Of a DNA stretch of 64,000 nt, positions 5,028 through 18,751 are shown in pieces. The DNA lies in assembly GCA_033442325.1 (NCBI GenBank), contig JAWQFM010000014.1, positions 1,074,241-1,138,240 of the forward strand, written 5' to 3'. Every line of letters starts with the position of its first letter. Positions within the stretch are counted from its first letter, which is position 1. A program made the position numbers and the translations under genes. The notes below the pieces were generated by a model that saw only the letters and a list, made by a program, of their open reading frames with translations, had not been told where the DNA came from and did not search any database. Source of the stretch: Salpingoeca rosetta. Lineage: Eukaryota > Protista > Choanoflagellata.

Positions 5028-8000
5028 ATGTCCTCGGTCGACGAGGATGTTGATGTGTCGCAATGCACCGAGGTATGTGTGCATGCGTGTGTGTGTCTGT
5101 GTGTGTGTGTGTGTGTGCATGTGTGTGTGTGTGTGTGTGTGAACTCGCTGCTGTGCCGGTGCATGATTCCAGGGTGCATAACTGAAGGGTACATGACTAC
5201 CAGGGCATGCTGCCGCTCACGATGATTGACCCAACTTGCTTGTGTTCAACTGTTTTGGCGACGCTGTATAAAGGCTGAGCGCATGATTGCGATGTTCGTG
5301 GACAAGCTGAAAGATGCGGGAGGCAGCAATGCCAACGCGTTCTCCATGCTCGCCGACAAAGGACACAGCGATGACAGGTACTGCGCCATCAGCTGCAGCA
5401 CAGCCAATGCACAGCCCGTATGCCGACTGCCTCCACGACCACTGGGGTTTGTGTGCGTGCTCACCACTGGTGTTGTGCTTCTTCGTGTCTGTCTGTATCC
5501 AGCGGAAGCGCGAGGTCAAGACGGAAAGCGCAGTCGGATGAGTCGTGGAAGTCCATTGATGCCGCCCACACAACACTGCCGTTTGCTCAGCCAAAGAGTA
5601 AGCTGGCTACCTCACGCATGTGCATGTTTATGTGTGTGTGTGTTTGTCTGTCTGTCTGTGTGTGTGTGTGTCTGTCAGACTGTCTGTCTGTCTGTCTGTC
5701 TGTGTGTGTGTGTGTGTCTGTCAGACTGTCTGTCTGTCTGTCTGTCTCTGTGTGTGTGTGTGTCTGTCTGTCTCTGTGTGCGTGTGTGTCGGTGCGTGTG
5801 TGCATGTGTGTATGTGATGATGCTCACAGCGCATCTAGAGCTGTCGACAACTCACCCTTGCTGCGCATTCTCGTGCGTGTTACTTGTGCCTGTGTGCTCC
5901 AGTCATTGAGCACGGAACGCTGCGACCGTACCAGCTGGAGAGCCTTCAGTTCTTTGCCAACCTCTACAGACACGGCGTATCTGGTGGCATTCTCGCCGAC
6001 GAGATGGTCTGCACTCGTGCGTGCCTGTGACCAGCAACCACTTGTGTGTCACACACACACACACACACACACACACACACACACACACACACACACACAC
6101 ACACACACACACACACACGCACGCACACACACACACACGCACGCACACACACACACACACACACACGCACGCACACACGCACGCTCGCTCGACAAAGCTC
6201 ATTGCCGACCCATGGTTGCCCGGCTGCGCCCTGTTCTGCGTCGTAGGGCCTGGGGAAGACGCTGCAAACCATCTCTTTGCTCGCGTATCTGCATGAACAC
6301 AATCTCTCGCGTGGCGTGCACCTTGTCACCTGTCCGCTCAGCGTTCTCGGGTGCGTGGCAGTTACATCTCATCAGCTGGTTCCTGTTCGTCGCTGTTTGC
6401 CAATGCCACATGTTGGTTCTCTTTCCTCTTTTCCAAGTGTTGCCCTGTCGACACACACACACACTCACTCACACACATGCATGTATGCACACACACATAC
6501 GCGTTCACAAACCCATTGGTGCATGCGCAGGAGCTGGTCAAACGAGTTTAAGCGGTGGTGCCCGTCGCTGACGGTGCAGGTGTACCACGGGCCAGAGCGA
6601 GCCGCCGTTGCAAAGAAGCTGCGCAAAATTGCAAAGTCGGCTGCCCCCCCCACCACCCCAAATCATTGCTCCATTGTGCTCTTGATACACGTGTGCCTGT
6701 GTGTGTGTGTGTGTGTGTGTGTGTGTGTGTGTGTGTGTGTGTGTGTGTGTGTGTGTGTGTGTGTGTGTGTGTTTGGTGTTTGGTTGGGCCTGGAGAACAG
6801 CAAGCAGCAGCTGATTCTCAATCATCGCTGACTATGTGAGCGTGCGTGCGACTGGCAGGACGGCAAGGCCGCAGGACTCCGTGCAGGTGCTGCTGACGAC
6901 ATACGAGATGGTGTCCAAGGACAAGCGCATGTTTCGCATCTTCAACTACGACTGCGTTGTCGTCGACGAGGCACACCGCCTCAAGAATGAAAACTCGCAG
7001 GTGTGTGTGTGTGGGGGGGGGGGAGCTCTCGTGTTTGAGCTTGACACACCGAAGTGTTGCCACGCTATCGCCCTCACCCTCCAACTGTCATCCCTTCCCA
7101 ACCTGCTTCATCGTGACCTCTTGTGTGCAGTTGTCGTTGAGCCTGCGGGCGCTCAAGTCGTCATTCCGCCTCCTCCTCACGGGAACGCCAATCCAGAACA
7201 ACATGCACGAGCTCTGGTCCCTCCTCAACTTCCTCTTCCCACAGGTTGGCACATGGTCTTGTGCGTGTGTGCGTGTGTGTGTGTGTGTGTGTGTGTGTGT
7301 GTGTGTGTGTGTGTGTGTGTGTGTGTGTGTGTGTGTGTGTGTGTCGAGCTTGGCGTTGCTTTTGGCACTCCCGCAAAGGGATTGCCTGTTTGTCCAAACA
7401 GAGCTCACGGTCATCCACCACACTACACCGCGACACCGCCAACTGCAGCTGTTTGGGGAGTCGACGACATTCGACACGCTGTTTGACGTCAAGACGGGGC
7501 ACGCGGACAAGGACGTTCTCGCAAAGCTCCACTACGTGCGTTGGCTTGATTCCAGCTATCACCTGCTCGCCAAAATGCGCAAACGAACTTCCATCCCTGC
7601 ATGCGCGCGCACACACACACTGACTCGCTCACATACACACACACATACACACACTCTCTCTCACACACACACGCACACACGCACACACACCACACACACC
7701 ACACACGCACACACTTGCTCGCTCGCTGGCAGATTTTGAAGCCGTTTACGCTGCGGCGGTTGAAGCAGGATGTGGAGAAGGCGCTGCCGGACAAGATTGA
7801 GACCAATCTGTACGTGACGCTGACAGACCTGCAGAAGAAGTACTACAAGGCGATACTGGAGAAGGACGTGCACGGCCTGCTGGCAGAGATGCGCGGGCGG
7901 TCGAAGACGCGCTTGCTCAACACCATCATGCAGCTGCGCAAGGCATGCAACCACCCCTACCTCTTTGATGGCGTTGAGCCCGGCCCTCCATTCACAAACG

Positions 8001-17000: not shown

Positions 17001-18751
17001 AGACGTGTCTCTCTCTCTCCCCTTGCCCTTTTCTTGTTGGGATGGAAATGCCGTTGTCTTTGTGCGTCAATTTGTGACTGTGAACTCACTCGGCGTTGCA
17101 CGTTTGTACACACACACACACACATTCCCGGCGCCCGCATACGCAAACACGCATGCAGATGTTGAAAGATGGGCTGAACCGACATCGACGGGAGATTGCG
17201 GCAATGCCTGCGAAAGACCTGTTGCAGCAGCACTTTGCGTCGAGCGAGCGGTTCATGGGGTATTCGCAGCGCAACGCCTCTCGCGCTGGGACGGATCCCG
17301 TGGCGATTGCCCGGGCACAGCAGCTGGTTGGGCCCGGCGACGTTGCAACCGTGGACGCCACATTTACCCTAATGTCCAGAGTGTTGGGTGACGGCGCCTT
17401 TGACCTTCACAAACAACGCTTGCAGCAGCAGCAGCAGCAGCAACAACAACAACAACAACAACAACAACAACAACAACAACAACAACAACAACAACACAAC
17501 CAGCAGCAATTTCAGCAGCTATTACAGCGACAACAACAGCAGCAACAGCAGCAACAAGAGGAGCAGCGAAGAAGACAGCAGCAGATGCAGCAACGCCAAC
17601 GGCAATACAACAAACGTTTGCGTCATCAGCAGTTGGGCGGGGATGCCCAAGCACCTGCACATGGTGGCAAGCGGAGAGCAGACGGTGCTGATGCTGCGGG
17701 GCACCAACTGCAGCACCCTTTATCTGCCTCATCGAGCGTGCATGCAAGCAAACGGAGCAAGCGTGTGGGTCACGAGGCCACAGCAGCCACGGCATCCGAT
17801 GCTGTTGTTTTGATTGCCGACGACGACGACGACGACGACGACGACGACAATGAAGCCGACAACGATGGCGATGCTGCTGCCGAGGGTGGTCGTGTTCGTG
17901 GTCATGAAGCTGGCGAGGGTGCAGTGGCGGCGAGTGTCGAGAATGACCATGAAGGACGCCAGGCAGCAGAGACCCACACGAAGCACCGCAAGGCCGCGGG
18001 AGCACGGATGGACACGACGGGGGAGCGCGACGCAATAACCACTGGTGTTGCACATGGCACACACGCTGCTGGCGGTGGGAACGATGGCGACGATGAAGCA
18101 ACGGAGACGGGATCGGTGGAAACGGAGAGCGACCCGTCAACGGTGGCGACAGACAACAACGACAACCACGACCACCACAACAACGCCGGTATCCCGGGCC
18201 GCCTTCATCAGCGAAAGGGCTCTGACGAGACGGTCACGGACGAGGGATCAGACCACGGTTACGGCCACGGGCAGGGTGCACAAGCATCATTGCATGCACC
18301 ACCATCCCACTTCCACCAACAACAGCCGCCGTTGCGAGCGATGCCGACAATGGCAACTGCAGCTGCCTCTGCGAACCCACGCGGTGGTGGTGGTGGTGGT
18401 GGTGGTGGTGGTGGTGGTGGTGGTGGTGGTGTGGTACCCTTGCAGGTGCACCTACTGCAGGAGCATCCCATGCTGTCTGATGCTTTGGCCGCACCGCCGT
18501 CGCAGGGAGGCGCAGCAGCAGTGTCACCGCAGTCATCCTCGCGCACATCCACGGCTTCACCGTTCAGCACCGGCAGCAGTAGCAAGAAGAAGAAGAAAAA
18601 GAAGAAGCACAAGAAGCACAAGAAGAAGCATAAGAAGCACAGGAAGCAGGATAAGCCCATGGAGCGCAGTGAGGACAAGGATGAGACATCCGATGACGGT
18701 GTCGATGACGACGAAGACGACGACAACGACGAACAAACATCGCTCAAGTGA
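5028..18751 (+). CDS. Multi-exon ISWI-like SNF2 chromatin-remodelling ATPase fused to RCC1 repeats, a CxxC..CxxC module and a low-complexity C-terminus
   Basis: Spliced exons give LRPYQLE..GILADEM|[12 protein letters not shown] (Walker A), [10 protein letters not shown] (DEAH), [99 protein letters not shown], and NegC-like [27 protein letters not shown]. From about 12133 to 15030 are RCC1 repeats: [116 protein letters not shown]. Splice phases are compatible at every junction from 10749 to the last exon (17159-18751). Confidence 0.85.
9091..9200. repeat. (GAT)n intronic microsatellite
   Basis: Visible atgatgatg run inside an intron of the SNF2 gene. Confidence 0.95.
13033..13092. repeat. 30-bp direct tandem duplication (CATTTGAGGACTCGTTCACATCAATCAACA x2), intronic
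   Basis: Two adjacent identical copies. Confidence 0.9.

Follow-up and report, generated by a model that had tools for sequence, protein, structure and literature searches.

A gene of 36 exons occupies positions 5028-18751 on the forward strand of a 64,000-nucleotide (nt) stretch of the genome of the choanoflagellate Salpingoeca rosetta (GenBank assembly GCA_033442325.1, contig JAWQFM010000014.1, positions 1,074,241 to 1,138,240). This whole stretch is referred to here as the window, and coordinates are given relative to its first nucleotide. In the model built for this analysis, the exons join into a single open reading frame (ORF) of 6612 nt encoding a protein of 2203 amino acids (aa). The protein leads from an ISWI-type ATPase and a NegC-adjacent segment through an acidic linker and a small, conserved linker domain to an RCC1-like domain with seven blades, after which come a degenerate PHD remnant and a long tail of low complexity. 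An earlier note on this DNA, made from the sequence, had read the gene as an ISWI-type remodeller in which an RCC1 repeat region takes the place of HAND-SANT-SLIDE.

Organization of the Locus

Exons 1-3 (5028-5597) encode the N-terminal region (aa 1-81), which is collinear with the N-terminus of P0009, a homologue from Bicosta minor, and contains a basic SRRKAQ stretch; a basic stretch where AutoN would be expected was judged by eye only. The SNF2_N and Helicase_C parts of the ISWI-type ATPase follow, divided among many short exons, in exons 4-16 (5903-9862, about aa 82-587). Exon 17 (10016-10749) carries the NegC-adjacent ITDEDID segment and then the acidic low-complexity linker, and it ends in phase 2 with FNQHWR and the nucleotides CT. 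Intron 17 (10750-11023) comprises a GTGAGT donor with a TGA at 10751-10753, a (GT)n microsatellite and a CAG acceptor. The conserved linker domain is contained within about aa 850-925 in exons 18-21 (11024-11854), where four joints are confirmed by RNA, and the RCC1-like domain (aa 955-1333) extends from exon 22 into the first part of exon 31 (12133-15048). The end of exon 31 and the start of exon 32 (15049-15408) encode the PHD-finger remnant (aa 1334-1371), and the C-terminal tail (aa 1372-2203) covers 15409-18751, with the stop codon TGA at 18749-18751.

An in-frame stop is located 30 nt 5' of the ATG. The end of exon 6 (6675) and the start of exon 7 (6875) are uncertain boundaries. The 35 introns are short and of uniform size, with a median length of 199 nt (range 99-315), and (GT)n or (CA)n runs of at least 12 nt are present in 22 of them (window positions 5073-17158). 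Intron 17, at 274 nt, is ordinary for the gene in both length and microsatellite content.

A Single Transcript Spans the ATPase and RCC1-Like Exons

RNA evidence was mapped to positions 9300-15250 in the form of raw RNA-seq reads (runs X19 and X20) and contigs (runs X4 and X6), the latter two runs being taken as RNA-like on the grounds that about 40% of the words are present in them, which equals the exonic share. The critical joint, 10749>11024, has GT..AG borders and skips 274 nt. It is crossed by six raw reads of X20 with six different starts, at least one of which has 47 nt on its shorter side, as well as by one X4 contig and one X6 contig, so that spliced reads and contigs of three studies join 10749 to 11024. 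The contigs over this joint extend upstream to about 10492 and 10585, and one of them, a 1958-nt contig of X6, runs from about 10492 (inside exon 17) through the joint, with pieces listed to 14862. Further downstream, reads and/or contigs contain the joints 11083>11202, 11314>11505, 11668>11825, 11854>12133, 12311>12476, 12591>12799, 12914>13134, 13184>13377, 13804>13985, 14036>14198 and 14862>14988, and a loose RNA end at 15105 matches the start of exon 32 at the exon 31/32 junction. RNA support covers exons 14-32, in the form of joints in reads and/or contigs. Joined together, the confirmed exons form one frame that is open from the ATPase into the RCC1 repeats, and across 10700-12900 the ATPase-side exon is spliced onto the RCC1 exons. 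These data show that 5028-18751 is one transcription unit, expressed as one spliced mRNA. The proposal that the frame continues past the acidic linker by way of a GT donor after 10749 is thus borne out by RNA. The 18 further exons with matching phases that had been counted after this donor are to be corrected to 19, and 15 of these, exons 18-32, have RNA support. As had been claimed, the frame stays open when the exons are joined.

An alternative is that the locus holds two neighbouring genes, an ISWI-like gene ending with the TGA at 10753 and a separate RCC1-like gene, and that the fusion is a product of read-through, a chimera or an assembly artefact. The unspliced frame does stop at 10751-10753, the RNA contigs break within the acidic repeat at 10465-10625, and six X20 reads start at 10716, all of which would fit two genes. 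However, the TGA is part of the CT/GTGAGT donor and is spliced out with intron 17, so the apparent stop is removed from the message. The bin 10892-11090, which holds most of intron 17, has a depth of 0 in X19 and 1.79 in X20; the latter value is ascribed to exon 18, and the depth of these two runs gives no sign of intron 17 retention. The two halves of the gene also have similar depths in X20 (11.7 at 10096-10294 compared to 8-9 on RCC1 exon bins). The contigs break nowhere but in the masked acidic repeat, a break that is attributed to this masked low-complexity stretch, and the contigs over the joint, like the six differently starting spliced reads, bridge the two halves. Finally, homologues with the same order of parts are encoded by single ORFs, and the position of the donor is shared by a relative. 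The latter was found with HMMER, in which exon 17 gave seven matches, none identical; word-index searches likewise did not list the protein of this genome. Among the HMMER matches, P0001, a 231-aa ORF from a relative, is 55% identical to exon 17 and also ends with HWRL. Here, too, the "stop" in the contig falls within the donor (TT/GTAAGT), indicating that the intron position is conserved in this AT-rich relative. Two separate genes are, in light of this, highly improbable.

The reads that begin at 10716 allow for another possibility, namely that an internal start near this position adds a shorter mRNA encoding the linker domain, the propeller and the tail without the motor, in which the first ATG in frame would encode the M of EEMVFKF (exon 18). 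Of about 17 X20 molecules, six start exactly at 10716, which is 34 nt before the exon 17 donor, and contig depth is higher on the RCC1 half than on the ATPase half, by 2.5x in X6 (18.5 vs 7.3) and 1.3x in X4. The pile-up could reflect an internal transcription start with a propeller-only isoform, or it could be a library artefact. It is seen in one run only, where copies or fragmentation bias may produce it, 3' bias would also account for the depth ratio, and spliced reads and contigs extend upstream of 10716. An additional short mRNA is considered unlikely.

Several side observations accompany the transcript. In the AT-rich relative (Logan contigs SRR14727191 and SRR14727189), the end of the preceding exon (FGADRVFKS) and the phase-2 donor after HWR are both shared with S. 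rosetta. A 215-nt contig of X4 with a depth of 2.6 covers intron 31 (15104-15250) on the minus strand without splicing and may represent antisense RNA or pre-mRNA/DNA carry-over. Translation of the intron microsatellites yields, whatever the frame, long C/V/H/T "ORFs" that clutter lists of ORFs. Upstream of the gene, a 1273-aa open frame at 230-4051 on the forward strand, featuring coiled-coil-like, poly-Q, poly-K and acidic runs, stops about 1 kb before the ATG.

An ISWI-Type Motor and Its Canonical Paralogue

In the spliced model, helicase motifs I-VI are all intact, and the ISWI-typical VEPGPPF is present in the ATPase and is followed by a post-ATPase segment through LQTFSL. The ITDEDID segment of exon 17 aligns to SMARCA5 residues 668-712 (E 0.006) and is a candidate for the NegC region. 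A phmmer search of the Protein Data Bank (PDB) with exon 10 places ISWI/SNF2h chains at 5e-30 to 4e-28 (about 1e-30), ahead of CHD1L (1e-19), Chd1 (1e-18), SNF2L2 (BRM; 1e-16) and yeast Snf2 (1e-13), with SNF2/BRG1 and INO80 at 1e-16 or weaker. Outside the fusion family itself, the matches of the family profile are ISWI-type proteins, nearly all of them with HAND or SLIDE. By these sequence comparisons, the motor is nearer to ISWI than to the CHD, SNF2, INO80 and SWR1 subfamilies, in agreement with the intact ISWI-like ATPase, complete in its helicase motifs and EPGPPF, that had been described from the sequence.

The idea that HAND-SANT-SLIDE was replaced in the ISWI of this organism did not hold. 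Across the 68 contigs of the 55.4-Mb genome, Pfam SLIDE and HAND match one only (C1), and tblastn locates there, at about 1625860-1631000, a canonical ISWI with HAND, SANT and SLIDE. Because the genome retains this HAND/SLIDE ISWI on another contig, the fusion gene is a divergent paralogue of canonical ISWI and not a replacement for it. In the ATPase tree, the canonical protein of S. rosetta groups with animal and nucleariid ISWIs (95/99). One unusually long exon of 372 aa covers most of its ATPase.

The outgroups of this tree consist of SWR1-, INO80- and Mot1-like proteins only. Other SNF2 genes of the genome that served as outgroups are found at C17:1193500-1200500, C22:258000-263000 and C27:712500-717500; their motifs, by eye, are SWR1/SRCAP-like, Mot1/BTAF1-like (with the ATPase in one exon) and INO80-like. 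Sequences from Cyprideis, Oryza and Closterium as well as P0109 were left out of the tree for their overly wide matched ranges.

A Conserved Linker Domain Without HAND-SANT-SLIDE

ISWI remodellers are functionally defined by HAND-SANT-SLIDE, the sensor of linker DNA and the basis of nucleosome spacing. Domain scans were carried out on exon pieces of the S. rosetta gene and on full-length homologues. In the pieces spanning 9737-18748, no Pfam match to HAND, SANT or SLIDE was obtained at E up to 1. A cryptic HAND-SANT-SLIDE in the linker was also considered and rejected: hhalign of the linker profile against a HAND-SANT-SLIDE profile of eleven ISWIs gives a probability of 0.15%, and no SANT- or Myb-like match is among those listed in Foldseek and exhaustive fold searches of the linker domain. 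Pfam, profile-profile and fold comparisons thus agree with the absence of these domains that the earlier note had reported. By eye, ...PLFEGFF in exon 17 recalls the start of HAND (WIEPPKRERK...YF); Pfam gives this candidate no support.

What the protein has at this position is a small conserved alpha/beta domain. Pfam finds nothing in the pieces between 10735 and 12690, while the linker element aligns with those of choanoflagellate and haptophyte homologues, whose form reads QWKRMKEALAMLGF...RTITVT...WPHVHQAVVLLQI. An AlphaFold2 (AF2) model of the Bicosta linker (P0009:740-915), with a mean predicted local distance difference test (pLDDT) score of 73.6, features a well-predicted H-H-E-H-H-E-E-long-H succession of helices (H) and strands (E). 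Foldseek of this model returns nothing at E 0.001 or better, the best matches having E 0.5 or worse. With an exhaustive aligner (VIA), Z reaches at most 5.3, which is below the level where a fold match means more than a common arrangement, and many of the rows are winged-helix domains (MarR, ArsR, CodY, Orc/Cdc6).

The RCC1-Like Propeller

Pfam RCC1, RCC1_2 and WD40_RLD match the exon pieces between 12690 and 14892, and blade-by-blade alignment with the homologues resolves seven blades at aa 955-1333. The AF2 model of the RCC1 and PHD part of the Bicosta homologue (pLDDT 82, predicted TM-score (pTM) 0.83) contains about 30 strands. The RCC1 repeats that had been recognised from the sequence are therefore real by Pfam, and the count of at least five rises to seven by alignment and by the homologue model. 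An extra RCC1 repeat was suspected at 16700-16850 and rejected, as this stretch belongs to the helical tail.

Among known propellers, the Bicosta model is closest to HERC2 RLD3 (RLD, RCC1-like domain), for which Foldseek gives E 5e-32 and TM 0.88. Its TM-scores to the HERC2, HERC1 and RPGR propellers are 0.85-0.88, out of an overall range of 0.75-0.88 when normalised to the target. By fold, HERC2, RCC2, RPGR, HERC1 and UVR8 all rank ahead of RCC1 (TM 0.75-0.81), which is placed 29th or lower. The sequence search follows the same order, with HERC2 at 2e-39, UVR8 at 7e-37 and RCC1 at 1e-21. From sequence and model, the propeller is a complete seven-blade RCC1-like domain and not an RCC1 orthologue. 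Because it resembles HERC2, UVR8 and RCC2 more closely than RCC1, the docking on nucleosomes and the Ran exchange known from RCC1 are not transferable to it by orthology.

This placement bears on two further explanations of what the propeller does. It may be a platform for a peptide or partner, as in HERC2 RLD2 or RPGR, recruiting a specific protein without docking on the nucleosome. The best matches (HERC2 RLD2/RLD3, HERC1, RPGR, RCC2 and UVR8), several of which have been solved with bound peptides or partners, fit such a role, as does the lower rank of RCC1 by both sequence and fold. However, no partner is known, and the adjacent CHD4/Rco1-type PHD finger of the homologues points to contact of the module with histones. 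A platform that works in this manner is possible, if not the favoured option, and it should be noted that partner binding and nucleosome docking are not mutually exclusive.

The other explanation, also raised in the earlier note, is that the propeller links remodelling to Ran/small-GTPase signalling. Most RCC1-like domains are not exchange factors. The propeller does have the fold of RCC1, a protein that binds nucleosomes and also serves as the exchange factor for Ran, but it is not an RCC1 orthologue by the E-values given above (1e-21 for RCC1 vs 2e-39 for HERC2). Since the propeller bears no special resemblance to RCC1, a link to Ran has the least support among the readings of this domain and is regarded as improbable, even with a RanGTP-dependent role at spindles reported for ISWI (PMC2806316).

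PHD-Finger Remnant and C-Terminal Tail

Downstream of the propeller, the homologues contain an intact PHD finger that belongs to the CHD4/Rco1/PHF12/AIRE/PHF21A class, with CHD4 (1e-20) as the best PDB match and Rco1 at 3e-16. PHD fingers of the CHD4/Rco1/AIRE type bind the unmodified N-terminus of histone H3. Alignment to these homologues reveals that the S. rosetta protein has retained ICEAC...CYSC but lacks the first CxxC and the HxxC. This loss is not the result of mis-splicing in the model, because the exon 31/32 junction across the finger is supported by RNA. A FYVE finger, first suspected from RICEACLNK, was rejected, since the alignment identifies this stretch as the remnant of the PHD finger of the family.

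No Pfam domain was found in the tail (aa 1372-2203), which is weakly collinear with the tails of the homologues. Its features include an NP..F-like motif, predicted coiled regions and runs that are poly-Q, acidic, poly-G or poly-K; in addition, the exon 33/34 junction falls within a weakly conserved QW...YH motif. Coding homopolymer runs in exons 33 and 36 are located at 15880-15990, 17480-17720, 18390-18440 and 18620-18690 and comprise poly-Q (CAG/CAA), poly-D/E, poly-G and poly-K/H. Such runs are probably variable in length and difficult to assemble.

A Family Shared by Choanoflagellates and Haptophytes

The combination of parts found in S. rosetta recurs in proteins encoded by single ORFs. 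The HMMER search with exon 17 also yielded P0005, P0008, P0009 and P0011, in each of which the linker element, the RCC1 repeats and one PHD finger come after an ISWI-like ATPase; P0009 is EukProt EP00729_P002669 from the loricate choanoflagellate Bicosta minor, and P0005, P0008, P0011 and P0111 are environmental relatives. A profile of P0005, P0008, P0009 and P0011 also recovers P0111 and a second group, P0114-P0117, which has the same order of parts with the addition of a second PHD finger and tetratricopeptide (TPR) repeats and of which P0117 is UniRef A0A6S9VAX5 from the haptophyte Chrysotila carterae. Pfam SNF2_N, Helicase_C, RCC1 and PHD are assigned to P0009, P0011, P0008, P0005, P0117 and P0114-P0116. 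The PHD finger of P0111 was recognised by sequence and is absent from its precomputed Pfam list. The window protein is collinear with all of these homologues, and this extends to the linker element, all seven blades and the NP..F motif after the PHD finger. Its ATPase is up to 59% identical to theirs, and tblastn of the ATPase exons to P0009 and P0011 gives 56-82% identity in the best exon-sized matches. Taken together, these comparisons show that a conserved family exists in craspedid and acanthoecid choanoflagellates, and that haptophytes possess a collinear group with a further PHD finger and TPR repeats. The family is absent among the animal proteins recovered by the searches performed here.

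In the ATPase tree, the window protein and the choanoflagellate-type fusions together form a clade with 100/100 support and a long stem. The haptophyte fusions group at 78/91, and the backbone is unresolved. In an approximately unbiased (AU) test, from which the Mot1-like outgroup was dropped for its very long branch, monophyly of all fusions was not rejected (p 0.345).

Two additional observations were made on related proteins. P0117 and P0114-P0116 have, after their two PHD fingers, a by-eye homeodomain-like stretch (QVKLWFDERER) and then the C-terminal TPR repeats. The ESM Atlas holds stand-alone RCC1+PHD clusters, mostly labelled Basidiomycota and Haptophyta, with scores of 0.85-0.86 that make them a lead only.

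The same architecture is thus already present in database entries, all of them uncharacterised. Full-text literature searches returned no published description of an ISWI-RCC1 fusion, and a preprint on the evolution of eukaryotic chromatin (10.1101/2021.11.30.470311) does not mention RCC1. The family is, in the literature as searched, undescribed. At the same time, its recurrence in other choanoflagellates and in haptophytes means that the architecture is not unique to S. rosetta.

Comparison With Known Remodelling Systems

The fusion shares with canonical ISWI (SMARCA5/SNF2H, Isw1 and Drosophila ISWI) the ATPase subfamily, EPGPPF and the post-ATPase ITDEDID...FS/T segment. In contrast to canonical ISWI, it has the linker domain, the propeller, the PHD remnant and a tail of about 830 aa instead of HAND-SANT-SLIDE, and its ATPase sits on a long branch. 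When compared to its own homologues from Bicosta minor, the environment and Chrysotila carterae, the S. rosetta protein differs in that its PHD finger is degenerate, its acidic insert is long and its low-complexity tail is much longer, whereas the homologues have the intact CHD4/Rco1-type finger and, in the haptophyte forms, a second PHD and TPR repeats. The seven-blade fold is common to RCC1 and to the other RLDs discussed above (HERC2, HERC1, RPGR, RCC2 and UVR8), with HERC2, UVR8 and RCC2 the nearer in sequence and fold.

The CHD3/4/5 (Mi-2) remodellers, like the homologues of the fusion, hold a SNF2 motor and a PHD finger of the H3-tail-reading class in one chain. Unlike CHD3/4/5, the fusion has an ISWI motor and not a CHD motor, its PHD finger is C-terminal to the motor, chromodomains are absent and a propeller is present. 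A functional parallel is offered by Trypanosoma brucei, where the ISWI complex contains TbISWI together with NLP, RCCP and FYRP (PMC4646403). RCCP is a subunit with RCC1 repeats, as the earlier note had stated; it is reported to be kinetoplastid-specific, and TbISWI keeps HAND and SLIDE (PMC4646403). In both systems an ISWI motor is linked to an RCC1-repeat protein, which is a separate subunit in the trypanosome and part of the same chain in S. rosetta. By analogy, the ISWI-RCCP complex is a true functional parallel to the fusion.

Proposed Function and Significance

As a whole, the evidence is likely to reflect a conserved ISWI-type motor joined to an RCC1-like propeller in one chain, acting as a remodeller that is targeted by chromatin state. 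The protein would be a nuclear nucleosome-remodelling motor of the ISWI type, its helicase motifs being intact, with a recognition module aimed at histones or proteins, and perhaps at DNA through a winged-helix-like linker, and not at linker DNA. In most members of the family, the PHD finger would lie beside a propeller with either the nucleosome or a partner as its docking site, and together they would replace the HAND-SANT-SLIDE sensor. Because such a module would contact histones or a partner, remodelling targeted by chromatin state is expected, as opposed to spacing by the sensing of linker length. In S. rosetta, where the PHD finger has lost one zinc site, targeting would occur mainly through the propeller and the linker domain.

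A number of points weigh against this reading. The fused protein is known from DNA and RNA alone, and the two ends of the model are predicted: exons 1-13 were placed by tblastn to homologues and by GT/AG sites, and exons 33-36 by splice signals of the same kind, by the frame being open and by a weak collinearity with the homologues. The pile-up of reads at 10716 could mark an internal start that would add a propeller-only isoform. The PHD finger is degenerate in the S. rosetta gene itself, which counts against the idea of a histone reader, and by sequence and fold the propeller has HERC2, UVR8 and RCC2 as closer matches than RCC1, with nucleosome binding as a putative property. From weak matches of its model to winged-helix domains, the linker domain may bind DNA; this is a lead only. 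Lastly, on the ATPase tree and the AU test, a single origin of the choanoflagellate and haptophyte fusions is no more than possible.

A more far-reaching and tentative proposal is that the family constitutes a new ISWI-type subfamily that would be at least as old as the choanoflagellate ancestor and shared or exchanged with haptophytes. In this subfamily, the linker-DNA sensor would have been swapped for a module composed of winged-helix-like, RCC1-like and H3K4me0-type PHD parts, with the motor steered by chromatin state. If this is true, a Rosetta-stone prediction follows, in which free RCC1+PHD proteins and the trypanosome RCCP would be ISWI-targeting subunits.

The fusion independently supports RCC1-like propellers as real partners of ISWI, an idea raised by the T. 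brucei complex. It also represents a natural experiment in which an ISWI motor is equipped with a wholly different recognition module, and it can show how such a motor acts under the guidance of contacts with histones or proteins. Choanoflagellates, in which the gene is found, are the unicellular organisms most closely related to animals, and tagging, knock-out and chromatin immunoprecipitation would be feasible if the species can be cultured and transfected.

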